In this document: piece by piece, positions 1-48,342 of the stretch
Numbering within the stretch: the first letter of the stretch is position 1
How the letters are laid out: every line of letters begins with the position of its first letter
NCBI GenBank assembly: GCA_963924565.1
Contig: OZ004615.1
Location: forward strand, 8,122,001 to 8,186,000
DNA: 64,000 nucleotides
Direction of reading: 5' to 3'
DNA from: Ascidiella aspersa
Lineage: Eukaryota
Translations under genes and position numbers: made by a program
The notes under the pieces: generated by a model
The model's input: only the letters and a program-made list of their open reading frames with translations
Database searches by the model: none
What the model was told of the DNA's origin: nothing

Positions 1-331
1 CCGACATCAAGTTAGAAATGATTTCTCTTCCGGCGATTTCAGACTGTACAACACTGTAGCCCATAAGTTTTAAATTTCGCTCGATAGCACAGACATAGTC
101 GAAATCATCAGGATGTCCAATCAAAGCAATATCCCCATCCGGGATGCCAGACGATGACACAGTTGAAGCTGTGTAGTAAGCTTGTGTATTATTTACATTA
201 TCCAGTGAAGATGTGCGTGTTGGTAAAAAAAATTTAAAGGAGCACATAATCAAATTAAATACCAATATATTGTTAAAGTAAAAGGATTATAAGTATAAAA
301 TCACCGAGATACCTGTAGAAGCAGCTTCCAT
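1..331 (-). CDS. 5' part (exon 1 at 313-331, partial exon 2 at 1-167) of a further TIR-SAMD9-like gene copy that continues beyond the left edge
   Basis: Near-identical to 30507-30836; reads MEAAST/ASTVSSSGIPDGDIALIGHPDDFDYVCAIERNLKLMGYSVVQSEIAGREIISNLMS with the same splice sites. Confidence 0.75.
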
Positions 332-10764: not shown

Positions 10765-11388
10765 CTACAACACACCGAATAGTCAAGAAAAACTTTGTTT
10801 TGGTTCAAATTTGCGAGGTATGTTTGTTACCCTCCTAATCTTGGTTTAGATTTGGTTTCCTACTTTTTATAAGCGACAACGTCTTATTATTTGCGAAAAA
10901 GTGTGTTGTGCAGCCATTTTTAATGTTTAAACAGGGTGTGGCCAAATAAAAAATACCTAAAAGACAAGAAATACTAGTTTAGTTAAAAATTGAAGTTAAA
11001 GTAATGTCATCTAAGTAAGGAAGAGGGATGAATGTCGTAAAAATAATTTTTGCGTTATCGCGGTCGACAGACAATTGGTTTTCAAAAGACTGGATGAAGT
11101 TCTTTTACAAGATTGTGTGCAACAACTTATCAAAATAGTTAAAATCACATTTGTTTCGCCAAAAGGTTCATTTAGAACAGGGGTTCTAAAACTGGGGTCC
11201 ATAGACCCCTTGGGGAACGTGAGCTCGTTTTAAGGGTCCATGAATGCCCAATTAAAAGACTAGTGTATATTTAGAAGTAATCAAACTTTCAAAGAAAAAG
11301 TTTAATAAAACTAAAACATTCTTGCACTGAATGTATTCAGACTTCATTTCACTTTCACATTTTTTGGACCGAAACTGCAGATTTTCAC

Positions 11389-11611
11389 CAGGATGTCCAA
11401 TCAAAGCAATATCCCCATCCGGGATGCCAGACGATGACACAGTTGAAGCTGTGTAGTAAACTTGTGTATTATTTACATTATCCAGTGAAGATGTGCGTGT
11501 TGGTAAAAAAAATTTAAAGGAGCACATAATCAAATTAAATACCAATATATTGTTAAAGTAAAAGGATTAAAAGTATAAAATCACCGAGATACCTGTAGAA
11601 GCAGCTTCCAT
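11389..11611 (-). pseudogene. Truncated TIR-SAMD9 copy: exon 1 (11593-11611) and first ~60 nt of exon 2, cut at a rearrangement junction
   Basis: Identity with 109-331 ends abruptly after DIALIGHP at ~11389; sequence further left is unrelated. Confidence 0.85.
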
Positions 11612-24840: not shown

Positions 24841-27800
24841 CTAGCTAATAACATACGCACAATACTGACATTTGAAAGAGATGTTTTGCTGATTAAGAGT
24901 CAGCCTTTCGCTTTTTCGATTGCACGAAGGACATTCGACTTTCTCGATCAACCGGACGCAGTGAGCCTCTGCTGCGTTAAAGGTGTCAAAAGCTACGTGG
25001 AATTCAACACGGCACCCCGATTTGCCTTGCATCTGATACCTTTTCGGAGTGAAATAAATGTATAACTTTTGTTGAAATTTCAGATCCAATAATATTAATC
25101 CAAAGATTGGATGGTTTGCCTTTTTAACGGTGCCTGTGCAAACTTGAAGTTGTTGCACAGCCTGAGTATTTGCCCAAGTTTTTTGCGTTTCATTCCACTC
25201 TCCTAATTGTTGTCTTTGAATAAATTTTTTAATGGTGTTTGATTTTTCATTGGTAAGAAATTCCAAACGTCTTCCTTTAACAAATGTTTGCGAGCGCATC
25301 TTTTGGCGTAACGTTTCAATTAGTTCAATATCATCGTTGTTTGGTTTATCAGAAGATACTACAATTGCAAATTTGATCGCGTACAGGTAAAGATCGGCAT
25401 AACCACGCTCGTTACGACTTCTCCAATCTGTCACAAATCGAAATACCACCTCTTGTAAGTTGTAACATTTTTCTGACAAAGCTGGATGACGAATATACTG
25501 GAGCCAGTTGTACATATCAAGATTGACAGAGACATCAATTGGGTGGGAATAAATGGTGGACAACAAATTTTCGTACATAGTGACAACATCCCTTCGACTC
25601 TGATTTTTATCAATGTAACCAACTGTTTCGTTTCCTTCTATTGCCCTTCTGGTATTTCGTAATTGATTGCGAACAAGGGGGATATTACGATGAATATTTT
25701 CAATTTCAAACAACTGAACCCTGTCATCTTTAAAATATAATTTGTAAGATATGAGTGCCTCTTGATATTTTGATTTGGCAAGTTCCTGTTTCCTTGATTT
25801 TAGCTTGCATTCTTCCAAAAGATCACCACATATGAAGTTCGAATTTCTGATAAACTCAGCAAGTCTGGGATAGGTTTCATTTAGTTTTTCGACATTAGAG
25901 CAGCCACCATGTCGCTTATCCACATACTCAGCAAAACGAAGTCGAAGCTTTATTTCGCCCATATAACCAAAAGAAAAATTGTCAATTGCCATTTGTCTGG
26001 ATTTGTGAAAATGGGAAATCGAAAGTTCGGCTTGGTCAAGGGCACTTTCTATATTTTCGTTACCTCCGTTTAGAAGTTGACTAGCATGTCTAGAACAACA
26101 ATTTGCAAACATGTTGTGAAATTGACAGGATTTTTGCAAAGTTGGATTGTGCTTTTCAAGGTCAAGTGCCTTTAATAGGTAAGTTTCTGCGCGTTGAAAG
26201 TCGCCAAACGCAGTGCACACTCTTCCGGCATGTCCATTGTAATCTGAATTATCGGGAAATGCGTCGACCAGAGCTACCATTACTTTTATTTTATTATCAT
26301 TTTCTGGAATATCATTTATAAGTGGAGCAAAGTTTACTTTCGCCTTATCGTCTGGTGTAGATTCACGCCGGATTAGCAGTAAATAAATGGAATGTCCAAT
26401 TCCCGACCAAGGTTGATTTCGACCACAAATCTGTTTAAAAATTTCAATCAGATCGATCACATGGGTGTGAAGAGATTGGCGAACGGATGGCAACAATGGG
26501 GCATAAAACGGTTCAGCCACCCTTTGATCATATTCGCTAGAGGGAGAAAGTGCCAACTGCAATATTTCTCTAGCCACCATTGGATACGATATTGTCCATT
26601 CATGTTCGTTTTCGATAAAAAATTGATAGGCTCTGTAAGGAAGGTCGGTCATTTTTACGAATTTCATCGAATTAGGGTGAAGGAAAGCCCTGAACGCATT
26701 CCTGCTGATTCCAGTCTGTCCGTAATAATCCAGAAGTGAAAGGTAGACCAAAATACGTTGCCACTTTGATAGTTCAGCTTTTTTACAAAAAAATCCCGTA
26801 ACGTAGCTCCTAATGCCGGTGTACTCCTCATTAAACGCGTACAAACCAAATTCGAACATTTGTGGGGCATCATATTTTTGATCAGCGCGAAGTTGAAGCT
26901 CTGCCATTTTACAAGAACCGTTTGAAACAAAATTGTTCAAAATTGTTATCAGACGTGAAGCTTCGTCCGAAGATGTCGATTCACTAAGGCTTAGTGAATC
27001 AGATTTTAAATCACTTCTGTTTTCGATTAGGTCCGACTTTCGTTCAACAAGTAGCACCACGAGTTCGATGTGTTGTTTCGCTTGATCGACGATGTTCTTC
27101 TTATCGACGCCGTCAAGTAAGATGAGCAACGGCAACCTGGTCTTTTCATACAGAATTTTTAGATTTTTTACAAGATCAGCCGTGGTAGGATAGGGTGGTT
27201 TAACTTCAATACATGGAATAACTTGTCGCAAAGACCACAGTATTTGTCGTGCGAGAGTGCTACCCCCACTTCCTGGAGTATGAATCAGCCTTAATATTTT
27301 TGGCTTCCATTCTTGATTAATCTCTTGTTTTATCTTTTCACACGCTTCATTTTCAATATCTCTTTTTATAGCAACATTACCCCTTGCAATGTGATCCCAT
27401 GTTGCTACACCACCTTTGTGAAATGACTCTTCTTTGGTTTTGCGTAACCTCTCATCGCTAACTTCTTCTGTTATGTTTATTTCCGTTGACAAAATATCCA
27501 TATAAGAAGGAAATTCTTTGGTTTTGATTTTGATTTTCTTTAATTCATCGTTAGAGGTCTTTCCAGGGACGGTCACGACTCCATACAATCCTGTATTTAA
27601 CATGGTTGGTCCAACCTTTTCAAAACAGAGACTAACTTCATAAGGTGAAATTTGCACACACGTAGAATCTAGTTTATACTTGCTCAGTGTTGTAAACAAG
27701 TGTGAGTCAGATTTAGGCGTTTCGGGAACGCAAAAAATCAGTTTAACGGGAAAAGTCTTTATATTCCCAATGGTGAATTGTTTTCGAATTAACTGTAATA

Positions 27801-28616
27801 ATCGATCAAGAATGTAGCATGAAATGGAATCTGTTTTGTACCAGAGCAAAACAAAGCATGCCGTTTTGTCTGGACAACAATACTGAGCTGCTTTGGTCAC
27901 AACTGTTTCCAAAGCGGTATCGTATTTATCTTCCCAATCCGAGTAATCTGTGACGCACTTATTGGTTATCGCAAGCCAATTGGTTTTGTCAGCTTCTAAA
28001 TCATCGACGTAGTCATCCACATTTCTTCGCGACACCTCTTTTTGCCTGAAATCTAATGAGTCAAACAGACACTCATCCTCATCTTGACAGTCCAAGTCGA
28101 ACACCTGTATCCACGGAATTGCTGATATTCCGCCTAACTTGTTGTTTGGTACGCTAGTTGTGACTAGAAAGTATGCTTGACTGCCATCGACTTTGTCAAA
28201 CATTTTTAAAATCGAAAACATCGAATCTTTATTGGTAGATGCAGATGAAGGCAATTTATCTTTTATCCAAGTTTCGTTTTGTCGTTGTGTGGTAGCTATT
28301 TCGCTTCTATGGCGCAGTGCATCACGAACTCTTGTCATCCAGCTCGGATGAATAAGAGCCCCTTCACGTTTTATTTTAATCATAGTATTATCAACAATGT
28401 GAATATAGTCACTTGAATCAACAAATGAACTAAAATCTCCCAGATTTAAAGCATCAAAACTACCGAATCGTGCTTCATATTGTGATTTTGTGTCATCTAG
28501 ACACTTCCGTGCCAGTTGTGAATCTTCCTTGGGATTAACGATGCTGCTGATTAGAAGATTAGCACAGAAAGCTCTTCTTTCTCTTTGGGTGTTTAAGCTT
28601 TCTATATCTGAAATAC
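24841..28616 (-). CDS. Single 3.8-kb last exon encoding the SAMD9-like core (copy 1)
   Basis: 1262-aa uninterrupted ORF; acceptor ttgcatacag|GT (alternative in-phase acceptor 9 nt downstream). Confidence 0.92.
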
Positions 28617-30836
28617 CTGTATGCAACAAGTTGGATATTAATAAAACATATTTTTCCGAATTTTCAATGCCGGTGACCCTGATTTAGTTTAGGTAGAAAT
28701 AAAAGTATAGTAAACAAGACCAAAAACTGAAAAGTACAAAGACAAGATGTATCTAGATGGTAGGTTAATTGGTTGCATTTCAGTTTAGTTTAAATTACTT
28801 TATTTTTTCAACTGAATGAATTTATGCAGATAAAAACGGAAATGTTTTGCTTGGGGGCAATACATTTGTCTGATTTGCCAACAATTACCGATTTATATGT
28901 GAATTAACTTTCTGAGCGATACGGCCTTTCCTTTTTGCCTGCCTGTCGTGGTGCAAGTTTTAATGCTGTTTTTGTGTAAAAGAACGAGTATTTTAGGTGA
29001 GTTGCGTTGTGTATTGTATGGTTTTGCCAGCCCTGATAATCTGACAATGTGCAAAATGTAACCTTTGCCAAATTTACTACGATGACACATTGGTCAGTTC
29101 GCCCAGCATTAACGACCTTTTGTATAAAACGTCTTGTAGTAATAATAACACTGCTTTTTTTTTGCACTACCTTGCTTTGTAAATTATTAAAGCGTAGTTT
29201 ATATCACGCCTTCTTACCTACACTTATGCGTGTGACATCATAATGATGCATTGGTAATTAAATTGCTTAAATTACGCGAATTTCTCCTGATTCTCCCGGT
29301 TCCCCAAATAGTTAGAACGTTATTATCATGCCAAATACATTTCCCGGAAACATGTAAAGCGACCTACATTTTTTGTTTTTAAAATATGTATAATAAAGAG
29401 GCAGGTCTACGTAGTCGGAGTCTGAACTCTAGCACGACAACATCAGACCAACCGAGTCCAAAGTCCAACGTGAAAATGCTTACCAAATTTGTAACCGATA
29501 AGGTACAAACTATAAATCGTAGGAGTAAAATACCATATAGTTAAAATAATATTCTAACTACTATTGTGGGTGTATTAGATTTATTACACGCATATGAGTA
29601 GATTGCTGTACATCCGCCCTATTTAAGTTACGTAAATGGGTGAAATACAGGCTGTCGACACAGGACTCAGGAGTCAAAGAAATTGGGGAATTGGCCAGGA
29701 TCGGATTTGAGAGTGGTACTACAGTTTATTTTTTCAGGCGGAGTTGGATTGTTTTCAACCTACTCCGCAGCCCTATTGGTCAGTAACAACTAACAAGAAC
29801 AATAAATTGCTTAAAAATTCTGCACGACACTCATGACCGCATTACAGAGAAAACCTAAAAGAGTTGTTGGGCAGTACGCAGCCGAACCAAATAAATAAGG
29901 AGCGTTACAATAATTTACAGTGGCGTTAACAACACTTCTGTATTTCTATAAATAGAAAATATTTTATAACTGACCTATTTCTTTTAACGCTTCGGTAAAC
30001 TGCGCAATTCTTTCTGCGGTTTCTTCAGCTGAGCATCCTGCTTTTATGTGAAACCCGCCTCGAAATTCTGAACTGGATGGTTTACTTTTGTCGCTTTCGT
30101 AAATGAGAAGATACAAATCTTTCAGCAACAACTTGGATTGATACAATGGCTCACAGAATTTATGAAACTGTTTGCATGTATTGTCCGTGAGCACCAAAAT
30201 ACTGAAAGGTAAAAATTGACATGTTCGATAGCACAGGTTAAGTTTTCTTAGCTTACACAGAAAAATTAGAAATTAATCGATTAAAACATTTAATACACGT
30301 TATAACTTCGGAAAGGATTACTAAAATCAGTCGGCCAAATCAGGATTTTCGTGCAAGTAAGTCCAGGCTAGAAAAACTCATTTAAAGGGGATCAACAGTT
30401 CGTTTTCAGCAACTGAAACATTAATTTTTTTCTTTCGGTAATCCTTTCGTAGGCTTTATTTGCAGAAATAAAAGGCTTACCTAGATAATAATGCATGGTG
30501 AACGCCCGACATCAAGTTAGAAATGATTTCTCTTCCGGCGATTTCGAACTGTACAACACTGTAGCCCATAAGTTTTAAATTTCGCTCGATAGCACAGACA
30601 TAGTCCAAATCATCAGGATGTCCAATCAAAGCAATATCCCCATCCGAGATGCCAGACGATGACACAGTTGAAGCTGTGTAGTAAGCTTGTGTATTATTTA
30701 CATTATCCAGTGAAGATGTGCGTGTTGGTAAAAAAAATTTAAAGGAGCACATAATCAAATTAAATACCAATATATTGTTAAAGTAAAAGGATTAAAAGTA
30801 TAAAATCACCGAGATACCTGTAGAAGCAGCTTCCAT
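24841..30836 (-). CDS. SAMD9L-like: TIR-domain SAMD9/SAMD9L-like STAND NTPase, intact copy, ~1404 aa (TIR - possible LOTUS-like - SIR2-like - P-loop NTPase - TPR - OB-fold - Zn ribbon)
   Basis: Exons 30818-30836, 30481-30673, 29975-30201 and 24841-28616 join in frame (phases 1, 2, 1). SAMD9 hallmarks: YFLVT...IPWIQVFDLD, F..GG..W, lysine-less Walker A HTPGSGGSTLARQILWSLR, Walker B LLILLD, TPR-like GDFQRAETYLLKAL, OB-like terminal VEFHVAF. Confidence 0.85.
29975..30673 (-). CDS. Two exons encoding a TIR-like domain (copy 1)
   Basis: DIALIGHPDDLDYVCAIERNLKLMGYSV (bA-aA-bB), AGREIISNLMSGV (BB loop-aB), SILVLTDN (bC), KFCE (aC), LYLLIYE (bD), FHIK...EETAERIAQF (bE-aE). Confidence 0.65.
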
Positions 30837-42542: not shown

Positions 42543-45500
42543 CTAGCTAATAACATACGCACAATACTGACATTTGAAGGAGATGTTTTGCTGATTAAGA
42601 GTCAGCCTTTCGCTTTTTCGATTGCACGAAGGACATTCGACTTTCTCGATCAACCGGACGCAGTGAGCCTCTGCTGCGTTAAAGGTGTGAAAAGCTACGT
42701 GGAACTCAACACGGCACCCCGATTTGCCTTGCATCTGATACCTTTTCGGAGTGAAATAAAGGTATATCTTTTGTTGAAATTTCAGATCCAATAATATTAA
42801 TCCAAAGAGTGGATGGTTTGCCTTTTTAACGGTGCCTGTGCAAACTTGAAGTTGTTGCACAGCGTGAGTATTTGCCCAAGTTTTTTGCGTTTCATTCCAC
42901 TCTCCTAATTGTTGTCTTTGAATAAATTTTTTAATGGTGTTTGATTTTTCATTGGTAAGAAATTCCAAACGTCTTCCTTTAACAAATGTTTTCGAGCGCA
43001 TCGTTTGGCGTAACGTTTCAATTAGTTCAATATCATCGTTGTTTGGTTTATCAGAAGATATTACAATTGCAAATTTGATCGCGTACAAGTAAAGATCGGC
43101 ATAACCACGCTCGTTACGACTTCTCCAATCTGTCACAAATCGAAAGACCACCTCTTGTAAGTTGTAACATTTTTCTGACAAAGCTGGATGACGAATATAC
43201 TGGAGCCAGTTGTACATATCAAGATTGACAGAGACATCAATATGGTGGGAATAAATGGTGGACAACAAATTTTCGTACATAGTGACAACATCCCTTCGAC
43301 TCTGATTTTTATCAATGCAACCAACTGTTTCGTTTCCTTCTATTGCCCTTTTGGTATTTCGTAATTGATTGCGAACAAGGGGGATATATCGATGAATATT
43401 TTCAATTTCAAACAACTGAACCCTGTCATCTTTAAAATAGAAATTGTAAGACATGAGTGCATCTTGATATTTTGATTTGGCAAGTTCCTGTTTCCTTGAT
43501 TTTAGCTTGCATTCTTCCAAAAGATCACCACATATGAAGTTCGAATTTCTGATAAACTCAGCAAGTCTGGGATAGGTTTCATTTAGTTTTTCGACATTAG
43601 AGCAGCCACCATGTCGCTTATCCACATACTCAGCAAAACGAAGTCGAAGCTTTATTTCGCCCATATAACCAAAAGAAAAATTGTCAATTGCCATTTGTCT
43701 GGATTTGTGAAAATGGGAAATCGAATGTTCGGCTTGGTCAAGGGCACTTTCTACATTTTCGTTACCTCCGTTTAGAAGTTGACTAGCATGTCTAAAACAA
43801 CAATTTGCAAACATGTTGTGAAATCGACAGGATTTTTGCAAAGTTGGATTGTGCTTTTCAAGGTCAAGTGCCTTTAATAGGTAAGTTTCTGCGCGTTGAA
43901 AGTCGCCAAACGCAGTGCACACTCTTCCGGCATGTCCATTGTAATCTGAATTATCGGGAAATGCGTCGACCAGAGCTACCATTACTTTTATTTTATTATC
44001 ATTTTCTGGAATATCATTTATAAGTGGAGCAAAGTTTACTTTCGCCTTATCGTCTGGTGTAGATTCACGCCGGATTAGCAGTGAATAAATGGAATGTCCA
44101 ATTCCCGACCAAGGTTGATTTCGACCACAAATCTGTTTAAGAATTTTAATCAGATCGATCACATGGGTGTGAAGAGAGTGGCGAACGGATGGCAACAATT
44201 GAGCATAAATCGGTTTAGCCACCGTTCGATCATATTCGCTAGAGGGAGAAAGTGCCAACTGCAATATTTCTCTAGCCACCAGTGGATACGATATTGTCCA
44301 TTCATGTTCGTTTTCGATAAAAAATTGATAGGCTCTGTAAGGAAGGTCGGTCATTTTTACGAATTTCATCGAATTAGGGTGAAGGAAAGCCCTGAACGCA
44401 TTCCTGCTGATTCCTGTCTGTCCGTAATAATCCAGAAGTGAAAGGTAGACCAAAATACGTTGCCACTTTGATAGTTCAGCTTTTTTACAAAAAAATCCCG
44501 TAACGTAGCTCCTAATGCCGGTGTACTCCTCATTAAACGCGCACAAACCAAATTCGAACATTTGTGGGGCATCATATTTTTGATCAGCGCGAAGTTGAAG
44601 CTCTGCCATTTTACAAGAACCGTTTGAAACAAAATTGTTCAAAATTGTTATCAGACGTGAAGCTTCGTCCGAAGATGTCGATTCACTAAGGCTTAGTGAA
44701 TCAGATTTTAAATCACTTCTGTTTTCGATTAGGTCCGACTTTCGTTCAACAAGTAGCACCACGAGTTCGATGTGTTGTTTCGCTTGATCGACGATGTTCT
44801 TCTTATCGACGCCGTCAAGTAAGATGAGCAACGGCAACCTGGTCTTTTCATACAGAATTTTTAGATTTTTTACAAGATCAGCCGTGGTAGGATAGGGTGG
44901 TTTAACCTCAATACATGGAATAACTTGTCGCAAAGACCACAGTATTTGTCGTGCGAGAGTGCTACCCCCACTTCCTGGAGTATGAATCAGCCTTAATATT
45001 TTTGGCTTCCATTCTTGATTAATCTGTTGTTTTATCTTTTTACACGCTTCATTTTCAATATCTCTTTTTATAGCAACATTACCCTTTGCAATGTGATCCC
45101 ATATTGCTACACCACCTTTGTGAAATGACTCTTCTTTGGTTTTGCGTAACCTCTCATCGCTAACTTCTTCTGTTATGTTTATTTCCGTTGACAAAATATC
45201 CATATAAGAAGGAAATTCTTTAGTTTTGATTTTGATTTTCTTTAATTCATCGTTAGAGGTCTTTCCAGGGACGGTCACGACTCCATACAATCCTGTATTT
45301 AACATGGTTGGTCCAACCTTTTCAAAACAGAGACTAACTTCAGAAGGTGAAATTTGCACACACGTAGAATCTAGTTTATACTTGCTCACTGTTGTAAACA
45401 AGTGTGAGCCAGATTTAGGCGTTTCGGGAACGCAAAAAATCAGTTTAACGGGAAAAGTCTTTATATTCCCAATTGTGAATTGTTTTCGAATTAACTGTAA

Positions 45501-45923
45501 TAATCGATCAAGAATGTAGCAAGAAATGGAATCTGTTTTGTACCAGAGCAAAACAAAGCATGCCGTTTTGTCTGGACAACAATACTGAGCTGCTTTGGTC
45601 ACAACTGTTTCCAAAGCGGTATCGTATTTATCTTCCCAATGCGAGTAATCTGTAACGTCCTTATCGGTTATCGCAAGCCAATTGGTTTTGTCAGCTTCTA
45701 AATCATCAACGTAGTCATCCACATTTCTTCGCGACACCTCTTTTTGCCTGAAATCTAATGAGCCAAACAGACACTCATCCTCATCTTGACAGTCCAAGTC
45801 GAACACCTGTATCCACGGAATTGCTGATATTCCGCCTAACTTGTTGTTTGGTACGCTAGTTGTGACTAGAAAGTATGCTTGACTGCCATCGACTTTGTCA
45901 AACATTTTTAAAATCGAAAACAT
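42543..45923 (-). CDS. SAMD9L-like: SAMD9-like STAND NTPase core, copy 2 (1126-aa open frame, disconnected from its TIR exons)
   Basis: About 96% identical to copy 1 (about 42 substitutions counted by eye); no internal stops; starts at the in-frame ATG of MFSILK. Confidence 0.75.
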   Translation of the reverse strand: MFSILKMFDKVDGSQAYFLVTTSVPNNKLGGISAIPWIQVFDLDCQDEDECLFGSLDFRQKEVSRRNVDDYVDDLEADKTNWLAITDKDVTDYSHWEDKYDTALETVVTKAAQYCCPDKTACFVLLWYKTDSISCYILDRLLQLIRKQFTIGNIKTFPVKLIFCVPETPKSGSHLFTTVSKYKLDSTCVQISPSEVSLCFEKVGPTMLNTGLYGVVTVPGKTSNDELKKIKIKTKEFPSYMDILSTEINITEEVSDERLRKTKEESFHKGGVAIWDHIAKGNVAIKRDIENEACKKIKQQINQEWKPKILRLIHTPGSGGSTLARQILWSLRQVIPCIEVKPPYPTTADLVKNLKILYEKTRLPLLILLDGVDKKNIVDQAKQHIELVVLLVERKSDLIENRSDLKSDSLSLSESTSSDEASRLITILNNFVSNGSCKMAELQLRADQKYDAPQMFEFGLCAFNEEYTGIRSYVTGFFCKKAELSKWQRILVYLSLLDYYGQTGISRNAFRAFLHPNSMKFVKMTDLPYRAYQFFIENEHEWTISYPLVAREILQLALSPSSEYDRTVAKPIYAQLLPSVRHSLHTHVIDLIKILKQICGRNQPWSGIGHSIYSLLIRRESTPDDKAKVNFAPLINDIPENDNKIKVMVALVDAFPDNSDYNGHAGRVCTAFGDFQRAETYLLKALDLEKHNPTLQKSCRFHNMFANCCFRHASQLLNGGNENVESALDQAEHSISHFHKSRQMAIDNFSFGYMGEIKLRLRFAEYVDKRHGGCSNVEKLNETYPRLAEFIRNSNFICGDLLEECKLKSRKQELAKSKYQDALMSYNFYFKDDRVQLFEIENIHRYIPLVRNQLRNTKRAIEGNETVGCIDKNQSRRDVVTMYENLLSTIYSHHIDVSVNLDMYNWLQYIRHPALSEKCYNLQEVVFRFVTDWRSRNERGYADLYLYAIKFAIVISSDKPNNDDIELIETLRQTMRSKTFVKGRRLEFLTNEKSNTIKKFIQRQQLGEWNETQKTWANTHAVQQLQVCTGTVKKANHPLFGLILLDLKFQQKIYLYFTPKRYQMQGKSGCRVEFHVAFHTFNAAEAHCVRLIEKVECPSCNRKSERLTLNQQNISFKCQYCAYVIS

Positions 45924-45997
45924 CGAATCTTTATTGGTAGATGCAGATGAAGGCAGTTTATCTTTTATCCAAGTTTCGTTTTGTCGTTGTGTGGTAG

Positions 45998-48342
45998 CTA
46001 TTTTCCCAGTTGTGAATCTTCCTTGGGATTAACGATGCTGCTGATTAGAAGATTAGCACAGAAAGCTCTTCTTTCTCTTTGGGTGTTTAAGCTTTCTATA
46101 TCTGAAATACCTGTATGCAACAAGTTGGATATTAATAAAACATATTTTTCCGAATTTTCAATACCGGTGACCCTGATTTAGTTTACGTAGAAATAAAAGT
46201 ATAGTAAACAAGACCAAAAACTGAAAAGTACAAAGACAAGATGTATCTAGATGGTAGGTTAATTGGTTGCATTTCAGTTTAGTTTAAATTACTTTATTTT
46301 TTCAACTGAATGAATTTATGCAGATAAAAACGGAAATGTTTTGTTTGGGGGCAATACATTTGTTACATCTGATTTGCCAACAATTACCGATTTATATGTG
46401 AATTAACTTTCTGCGCGATACGGCCTTTCCTTTTTTCCTGCCTGTCGTGGTGCAAGTTTTAATGCTGTTTTTGTGTAAAAGAACGAGTATTTTAGGTGAG
46501 TTGCGTTGTTTATTGTATGGTTTTGCCAGCCCTGATAATCTGACAATGTGCAAAATGTAATCTTTGCCAAATTTACTACGATGACACATTGGTCAGTTCG
46601 CCCAGCATTAACGGCCTTTTGTATAAAACGTCTTGTAGTAATAATAACACTGCTTTTGTTTTGCACTAACTTGCTTTGTAAATTATTAAAGCGTAGTATA
46701 TATCACGCCTTCTTACCTACACTTATGCGTGTGACATCATAATGATGCATTGGTAATTAAATTGCTTAAATTACGCGAATTTCTCCTGATTCTCCCGGTT
46801 CCCCAAATAGTTAGAACGTTATTATCATGCCAAATACATTTCCCGGAAACATGTAAAGCGACCTACATTTTTTGTTTTTAAAATATGTATAATAAAGAGG
46901 CAGGTCTACGTAGTCGGAGTCTGAACTCTAGCACGACAACATCAGACCAACCGAGTCCAAAGTCCAACGTGAAAATGCTTACCAAATTTGTAACCGATAA
47001 GGTACAAACTATAAATCGTAGGAGTAAAATACCATATAGTTAAAATAATATTCTAACTACTATTGTGGGTGTATTAGATTTATTACACGCATATGAGTAG
47101 ATTGCTGTACATCCGCCCTATTTAAGTTACGTAAATGGGTGAAATACAGGCTGTCGACACAGGACTCAGGAGTCAAAGAAATTGGGGAATTGGCCAGGAT
47201 CGGATTTGAGAGTGGGACTACAGTTTATTTTTTCAGGCGGAGTTGGATTGTTTTCAACCTACTCCGCAGCCCTGCTGGTCAGTAACAACTAACAAGAACA
47301 ATAAATTGCTTAAAAATTCTGCACGACACTCATGACCGCATTACAGAGAAAACCTAAAAGAGTTGTTGGGCAGTACGCAGCCGAACCAAATAAATAAGGA
47401 GCGTTACAATAATTTACAGTGGCGTTAACAACACTTCTGTATTTCTATAAATAGAAAATATTTTATAACTGACCTATTTCTTTTAACGCTTCGGCAAACT
47501 GCGCAATTCTTTCTGCGGTTTCTTCAGCTGAGCATCCTGCTTTTATGTGAAACCCGCCTCGAAATTCTGAACTGGATGGTTTACTTTTGTCGCTTTCGTA
47601 AATGAGAAGATACAAATCTTTCAGCAACAACTTGGATTGATACAATGGCTCACAGAATTTATGAAACTGTTTGCATGTATTGTCCGTGAGCACCAAAATA
47701 CTGAAAGGTAAAAATTGACATGTTCGATAGCACAGGTTAAGTTTTCTTAGCTTACACAGAAAAATTACAAAGAAATTAATCGATTAAAAAATTATATAAT
47801 ACACGTTATAACTTCGGAAAGGATTACTAAAATCAGTCGGCCAAATCAGGATTTTCGTGCAAGTAAGTCCAGGCTAGAAAAACTCATTTAAAGGGGATCA
47901 ACAGTTCGTTTTCAGCAACTGAAACATTAATTTTTTTCTTTCGGTAATCCTTTCGTAGGCTTTATTTGCAGAAATAAAACGCTTACCTAGTTAATAATGC
48001 ATGGTGAACGCCCGACATCAAGTTAGAAATGATTTCTCTTCCGGCGATTTCGAACTGTACAACACTGTAGCCCATAAGTTTTAAATTGCGCTCGATAGCA
48101 CAGACATAGTCCAAATCATCAGGATGTCCAATCAAAGCAATATCCCCATCCGAGATGCCAGACGATGACACAGTTGAAGCTGTGTAGTAAGCTTGTGTAT
48201 TATTTACATTATCCAGTGAAGATGTGCGTGTTGGTAAAAAAAATTTAAAGGAGCACATAATCAAATTAAATACCAATATATTGTTAAAGTAAAAGGATTA
48301 AAAGTATAAAATCACCGAGATACCTGTAGAAGCAGCTTCCAT
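45998..48342 (-). CDS. Copy 2 N-terminal part: predicted 183-aa TIR-only product ended by a frameshift (or a pseudogene)
   Basis: Exons 48324-48342, 47987-48179, 47474-47700 and 45998-46110. The 210 nt at 28302-28511 of copy 1 are replaced by 2 nt, giving ...KEDSQLGK-TAG (stop at 45998-46000). Confidence 0.7.

Follow-up and report, generated by a model that had tools for sequence, protein, structure and literature searches.

Human SAMD9 and SAMD9L matter both in antiviral defence and in disease, and their sole known output is the AlbA_2 tRNA nuclease, named as the known effector of SAMD9 in work cited in PMC13056530; as for its ligand, human SAMD9 reportedly recognises double-stranded nucleic acid (Hou 2025, as cited there). 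Here we describe a SAMD9-like gene in a stretch of 64,000 nucleotides (nt) from the ascidian Ascidiella aspersa (contig OZ004615.1, positions 8,122,001 to 8,186,000; hereafter the window), where it occupies positions 24841-30836 of the minus strand. Like human SAMD9 and SAMD9L (PDB 9zjr and 37ht), its predicted product has a SIR2-like region and a P-loop NTPase with a GxGGxT Walker A motif, followed in the same order, by weak colinear matches, by a helical/TPR region and a C-terminal domain. Unlike the human proteins, to which it is only about 20-25% identical, it carries no SAM and no AlbA_2, and a TIR-like domain followed by a linker of 130 residues stands in their place. The explanation that we consider likely is that this gene is an intact member of a tandem cluster, which combines a TIR-like head with a SAMD9 body and has lost both SAM and AlbA_2.

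Variation at the N-terminus of this family has been known since the survey of Mekhedov, Makarova and Koonin 2017, which lists SAM, CARD, Death, Pyrin, FIIND and a bacterial kinase as variants and does not list TIR (PMC5445408). In that survey SAM is limited to vertebrates, and is hence no requirement for membership; AlbA is placed in the core SAMD9 architecture, yet many bacterial members are without it. The invertebrate SAMD9-family proteins with DEATH-superfamily N-termini (PMC5445408) resemble our gene in having a variable homotypic adaptor before a conserved body, but here the N-terminus is TIR-like and AlbA_2 is missing as well. Legrand et al. 2025 mention neither TIR nor tunicates. A first reading of this DNA from its letters alone (the sequence-only reading) had cautioned that novelty needed checking. 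While TIR is indeed absent from the 2017 and 2025 surveys, varied N-termini are not new, and RefSeq already contains the fusion proteins of three ascidians, left uninterpreted under the names 'SAMD9-like' or 'uncharacterized'. The finding is therefore incremental: what is new is the domain reading and the loss of AlbA_2, a modest variation on a known immune family.

Bacterial Avs5, Avs6 and Avs9 (PMC12680541, PMC13581612), compared here by their descriptions only, also place an N-terminal effector before a STAND NTPase and a helical sensor, and exchange effectors between relatives. These systems are prokaryotic and sense phage proteins, and their named effectors are SIR2 or AlbA_2; Legrand et al. 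2025 argue that the likeness of SAMD9-like Avs proteins reflects convergence and not descent. Our gene is eukaryotic and has introns, and its resemblance to Avs is one of layout only. The combination of TIR and STAND is also the layout of plant TNLs and occurs in invertebrate NLRs. The bacterial Avs-style layout claimed in the sequence-only reading holds as an analogy and does not extend beyond it. The TIR-STAND receptors (plant TNLs, bacterial TIR-Avs/bNACHT and invertebrate TIR-NLRs) share with our gene a putative TIR-fold domain N-terminal to an oligomerising NTPase; their NTPase, however, is NB-ARC or NACHT, whereas here it belongs to the SAMD9 clade. Furthermore, Pfam TIR models recognise the TIRs of these receptors, in which the catalytic glutamate is retained, and neither holds here.

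A branch that keeps the sensor and the NTPase, and carries a TIR-like head in place of the nuclease, would mean that an animal family swaps output modules as bacterial Avs do. It would also provide a simple system for asking what the core of SIR2-like region, NTPase and sensor does alone, and it points to a TIR-like sequence family that is missed by current profile libraries.

Gene model and conservation of exons 2 to 4

The four exons, all on the minus strand, add up to a coding length of 4215 nt (1404 codons and a stop) and are joined in phases 1, 2 and 1. Exon 1 (30836-30818, 19 nt), whose position is inferred, starts with ATG and ends at a phase-1 GT donor. Intron 1 (30817-30674, 144 nt) separates it from exon 2 (30673-30481, 193 nt; AG acceptor, GTAAG donor), which encodes the first half of the TIR-like domain. 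The second half is encoded by exon 3 (30201-29975, 227 nt; AG acceptor, GTCAGT donor), beyond intron 2 (30480-30202, 279 nt), and intron 3 (29974-28617, 1358 nt) then leads to the AG acceptor of exon 4 (28616-24841, 3776 nt), which encodes the SAMD9-like body in 1258 codons followed by the stop at 24841-24843. All junctions read as GT-AG, and the open frame of exon 4 reaches just 4 codons upstream past its proposed acceptor. By the evidence of its sequence the gene is intact, with four exons. The exon model proposed earlier, with the small exons spliced in phases 1, 2 and 1 onto the large open reading frame and a product of about 1404 residues, is confirmed at the sequence level by this reading of the junctions and, for exons 2 to 4, by conservation in paralogues and orthologues.

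Exon 1 is the sole candidate combining an ATG, phase 1 and a GT donor in the 600 nt upstream of exon 2. The start codon placed there is a candidate, the alternative being an in-frame ATG within a longer exon 2. In the paralogue on contig 2 a stop codon lies directly upstream of the exon-2 acceptor, which suggests that the family does use a separate first exon. The possibility that exon 4 is an independent gene starting from its first methionine, at codon 132, was considered as well and was rejected because the 131 preceding codons are conserved across species.

Comparative evidence for exons 2 to 4 is strong at the sequence level. In the genome of the species (308 Mb, 75 contigs), peptides resembling exon 2 (59% identity, expectation value (E) 2e-13) and exon 3 (34% identity, E 1e-4) were found upstream of a paralogue whose body is 34% identical to that of our gene, with acceptors and donors at the same codon positions and phases. 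The contig-2 paralogue has the same exons in the same phases. These regions do not align as DNA, so that what has been kept is protein sequence, and only within the exons. When a profile of exon 2 was run against the whole genome, it matched five SAMD9-like loci and one truncated remnant and nothing else, exon 2 being always paired with a SAMD9-like body.

The same arrangement is seen in other ascidians. Three pieces of our gene match, in colinear order, a single protein of Clavelina lepadiformis (XP_076824011, here P0153): exon 2 at residues 17-72 (E 1.5e-6), exon 3 at residues 76-148 (E 2e-3) and the start of exon 4, which is the linker, at residues 166-250 (E 8e-8). RefSeq models of Ciona intestinalis (XP_002124220) and of Styela clava (XP_039249109) also carry this domain at their N-terminus.

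The SAMD9-like body and the absence of SAM and AlbA_2

Exon 4 opens with the linker module, its first 131 residues (28222..28614; this and the following features are on the minus strand). Next come the SIR2-like region (27445..28221), which aligns by profile to human SAMD9 and has a nearly invariant PW..VFD.D motif, and the STAND P-loop NTPase core (27016..27426), which is matched by Pfam nSTAND_NTPase5 (E 3.7e-8, 33.7 bits against a cut-off of 34) and by phmmer to human SAMD9. The Walker A motif of this core, GSGGST (27256-27273), is deviant in having no lysine, and aligns with GCGGTT of SAMD9. In the helical sensor region one TPR unit is recognisable (26146..26226; weak Pfam TPR_7 and TPR_2 matches), and the C-terminal region (24844..25167) includes a CxxC...CxxC zinc-ribbon-like motif (24859-24933).

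The sequence-only reading had called this product a SAMD9-like STAND NTPase, and it was correct in this: the protein has a homologous P-loop NTPase without the Walker A lysine and a SIR2-like domain directly upstream, and we therefore assign it, by sequence, to the SAMD9 family. Exon 4 matches human SAMD9 chains at the P-loop (phmmer E 2.4e-7), and family profiles match human SAMD9 at E 2e-17 and, with a profile of 31 homologues, at E 3e-33. The confident part of the profile alignment spans approximately SAMD9 residues 410-998 (the starting number, ~410, being derived from the construct chain lengths of PDB 9zjr and 37ht), covering the SIR2-like domain with its PW..VFDFD block and then the NTPase. 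Matches to the TPR and C-terminal parts of SAMD9 are colinear and weak; the C-terminal stretch lines up in order with SAMD9 residues 1451-1587 and falls short of significance by itself (independent E 120), and the profile also matches designed and natural TPR proteins. In a representative library exon 4 has 700 homologues, several of which carry the NCBI name SAMD9-like; the best, at about 31% identity, are ascidian proteins, and after them rank those of amphioxus, echinoderms, molluscs and a brachiopod. A separate homologue search with the body gave at least two matches in fish.

The first cysteine of the zinc-ribbon-like motif, C1228, is nearly invariant across the 31 homologues. We did not find this motif named among the SAMD9 domains in Mekhedov et al. 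2017 or Legrand et al. 2025.

Neither SAM nor AlbA_2 had been recognisable in the sequence-only reading, and this was borne out: on the pieces of the gene, Pfam gave no match at E up to 10 to a SAM domain or to AlbA_2 (PF04326). Just 131 residues separate the TIR-like part from the SIR2-like part, well short of the approximately 230 that an AlbA_2 domain needs, which supports its absence. Amphioxus and starfish homologues conserve the linker that fills this interval, though weakly, and in the starfish protein AlbA_2 follows it, so that in our gene AlbA_2 looks to have been deleted and not replaced in place. The fold of the linker was not assigned by Pfam, which was blank at E up to 10, or by the Atlas, where its score of 0.78 is at chance level. 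Its pattern may resemble an OST-HTH/LOTUS winged helix; a strong OST-HTH domain (E 8e-21) is found in two other SAMD9-like homologues.

A Pfam tally over 62 homologues gave AlbA_2 in 7, TCAD9 in 9, CARD in 3, Death in 2, OST-HTH in 2, kinase-like domains in 3, GT4-conflict in 1 and TIR in 0. A Death domain is also seen at the N-terminus of a Styela protein (P0010). The N-terminal modules of invertebrate SAMD9-like proteins thus exceed the set of 2017, with TCAD9 (9 of 31), APH/EcKL kinase-like (3), OST-HTH (2), GT4 and an Egalitarian-type winged helix (1). The GT4 'conflict-system' glycosyltransferase heads one such homologue with E 1e-71.

The N-terminal domain and its possible output

The N-terminal domain measures about 140 residues. 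Exon 2 holds an SSSG motif, strand A, helix A, strand B, a G-R loop and an S-N-x-M...K/H-H-A helix, and exon 3 runs from strand C onward and contains the glutamate of an 'FCEPL' motif. Evidence on its fold comes from a natural contiguous homologue, a Ciona fragment of 199 residues (P0167), and not from the joined exons of this gene; the alignment given to AlphaFold2 had 10 rows, including exon-wise pieces of three paralogue lineages. With this alignment the predicted local distance difference test score of the model rose to 63.9, and the predicted template modelling score was 0.61. When the model was compared to known structures using Foldseek, the top nine matches were all TIR (E 2e-3 to 2e-2, probability 0.93-1.00), including RRS1, TRAM, RPS4/RRS1, TLR1, SPARTA and TLR5, and about 30 of the 44 rows among the matches listed were TIR. 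TIR ranked first with two aligners and on two separate models, and the Atlas language-model neighbours of Clavelina residues 1-160 were bacterial TIR clusters (score 0.91). Sequence comparison gave three weak signals: TIR_2 on a second Clavelina protein, P0012 (13 bits, E 0.12), a profile match to the TRAM TIR (E 0.74), and an hhalign match to the TIR exons of this genome (P 0.029). All three share the segment of loop, helix B and strand C of TIR. Taken together, these results suggest that the domain probably belongs to the TIR superfamily. The earlier claim that the N-terminus follows a TIR fold is in this way partly supported, by the closest structural match found with a Ciona homologue, and finds no backing in TIR profiles. 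The remaining attempts were uninformative: the exon-2 and exon-3 peptides, predicted as two chains without alignments, scored 0.02, which carries no weight either way; a homologue search with Clavelina residues 1-165 gave no matches; and P0167 searched against this genome gave nothing useful.

Read as a whole, the predicted protein of 1404 residues would consist of a divergent TIR-fold domain, the linker of about 130 residues, the SIR2-like region, the P-loop NTPase, the helical/TPR region and the C-terminal domain with its zinc ribbon. We propose, by analogy, that the helical and C-terminal part would recognise a ligand, that the NTPase would then drive oligomerisation, and that the TIR-like domains, clustered at the N-terminus in this manner, could pass the signal on.

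Several observations weigh against parts of this reading. The TIR profiles of Pfam, NCBIfam and PADLOC were blank on the exons of the window and on four orthologues, save for the TIR_2 match to P0012 (E 0.12): no Pfam TIR profile matched exon 2, exon 3 or the orthologues P0153, P0167 and P0026, and PADLOC and NCBIfam gave only chance-level matches on the Ciona fragment (Cas1, AcrIF11). In a genome-wide scan, TIR_2 (PF13676) marked 29 TIR exons, 0 of them in this cluster. The structural evidence, in turn, is a medium-confidence model of the Ciona homologue and not of this gene, and the VIA Z score for TIR is less than 1 unit above those for Rossmann-like dehydrogenases and a deoxyribosyltransferase-like hydrolase. 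Blank libraries and a model of medium confidence would fit a reading in which the domain is not a TIR at all and is instead a receiver-like, deoxyribosyltransferase/SLOG-like or novel flavodoxin- or Rossmann-like module with an unrelated role; the invariant SSSG motif, which is not known as a TIR feature, points the same way. We regard this as rather unlikely, given the first rank of TIR with both aligners and both models, a Foldseek list made up mostly of TIRs, the TIR neighbours in the language model, and the coincidence of the three weak sequence matches on the loop, helix and strand C region. As for the gene itself, its RNA support is nearly nil. In one RNA-seq run of the same species, of which about 6% was searched at a likeness of at least 98%, 6 reads fell on the gene and 0 on a junction, which speaks neither for nor against the exon model. 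The ratio of non-synonymous to synonymous substitution rates (dN/dS) is 0.86-0.96 among the three young copies of the cluster, which also fits relaxed constraint, and the neighbouring copy at 42543-48342 already has a frameshifting deletion. One could therefore suppose that the small exons belong to a different gene from the large one, or that the locus is a recent duplicate which is not transcribed and is beginning to decay. This is very unlikely, however: the reading frame stays open through all 1404 codons; exon 4 lacks a start codon within its first 131 codons, which are conserved across species; the phases are kept in three paralogue lineages; annotated orthologues of three ascidians encode the same fusion; and exon 2 occurs only together with a SAMD9-like body.

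An intact gene with a TIR-like head leaves two main routes by which the head could signal, and here the candidate catalytic glutamate matters, since active TIR NADases keep it. In our gene it lies in the helix after strand C ('FCEPLYQ'), and Clavelina P0153 has a glutamate at the same place ('SFEILYQ'). The column is N in the divergent chromosome-9 paralogue and A in the chromosome-2 paralogue, which counts against a catalytic head. For the orthologues from Ciona, P0012 and Styela, MAFFT puts K, L and P, respectively, in this column, and if the alignment is shifted by eye so that their common LYQ/ILY motif lines up, each of them has G; among the orthologues compared, P0153 alone has E. The family as a whole is thus unlikely to depend on this glutamate. 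The TIR effector with NAD+ cleavage that had been suggested earlier therefore loses its footing, with no TIR profile match and the glutamate replaced by N, A or G in paralogues and orthologues. In its fullest form, that suggestion would have an active TIR NADase replace the lost AlbA_2 nuclease, so that sensing leads to oligomers whose composite active site cleaves NAD+ or makes a nucleotide signal. The closeness of the fold to TIR, the absence of the AlbA_2 effector, the bacterial TIR proteins among the Atlas neighbours and the glutamate common to this copy and P0153 all speak for it; the missing profile match, the glutamate column just described and the usual W-C-x-x-E spacing, which is not kept here, make it unlikely. 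We likewise find it doubtful that an ascidian-specific SAMD9 branch swapped the tRNA nuclease for a catalytically active, highly divergent TIR. If this were true, an animal SAMD9-type sensor would kill or signal through NAD+ cleavage, and effectors would have been exchanged within one animal STAND family in parallel to the swaps of bacterial Avs. Lack of conservation of the glutamate makes recruitment through TIR-TIR contacts, as an adaptor, somewhat likelier than NAD+ cleavage, and Death and CARD domains at the N-terminus of other SAMD9-family proteins favour a homotypic adaptor at that position. The sequence lends no support to NAD+ cleavage by the domain, which is at least as likely to act as an adaptor. 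By analogy, then, we give signalling of the heads by TIR-TIR recruitment slightly less than an even chance, and consider signalling by NAD+ cleavage improbable; the heads may also signal by some other route.

The gene cluster and its copies

Besides our gene, the tandem cluster on contig 9 contains two copies whose proteins are 96-97% identical to it and a third at 34%; paralogues of greater divergence are located on contig 2 (31%) and at another site of contig 9 (28%). In the three young copies DNA identity is 98.0% in exon 4 and higher, 98.8%, over the mostly intronic stretch that begins upstream of exon 1 and ends where exon 4 starts. Codons 601-900 of exon 4 (25915-26814, in the helical sensor region) show 16 non-synonymous changes and 1 synonymous change when our gene is compared to the left-hand copy. 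The counts are small, and the pattern of substitution may fit either diversifying selection or relaxed constraint.

The right-hand 96% copy (42543-48342, minus strand) is missing 210 bp, corresponding to 28302-28511 of our gene, and has 2 extra bases, with the break at about 46003-46006; the frame consequently shifts early in exon 4. Exons 2 and 3 of this copy are intact (open-frame pieces 47986-48297 and 47466-47783), and a frame of 1126 codons restarts at a methionine. The joint at the deletion is also present in a DNA contig from one sequencing run. As for the left-hand 97% copy, its exon 2 overlaps the start of the window (1-166, minus strand) and its body lies outside the window, at contig 9 positions 8116293-8120063. 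An exon-2-like remnant was detected at 11255-11566 on the minus strand (match at 11384-11446), which agrees with exon 2 at 86% identity over its first 21 residues and diverges from there on; this is probably debris of a rearranged cluster copy.

Two further sequencing runs were judged to be DNA by their coverage of introns. In both of them a stretch of intron 3 of our gene, 29455-29660, has a word depth 5-7 times that of its flanks, and contigs break at 29657. The stretch is probably a dispersed repeat, whose few RNA reads would come from other copies of the repeat.

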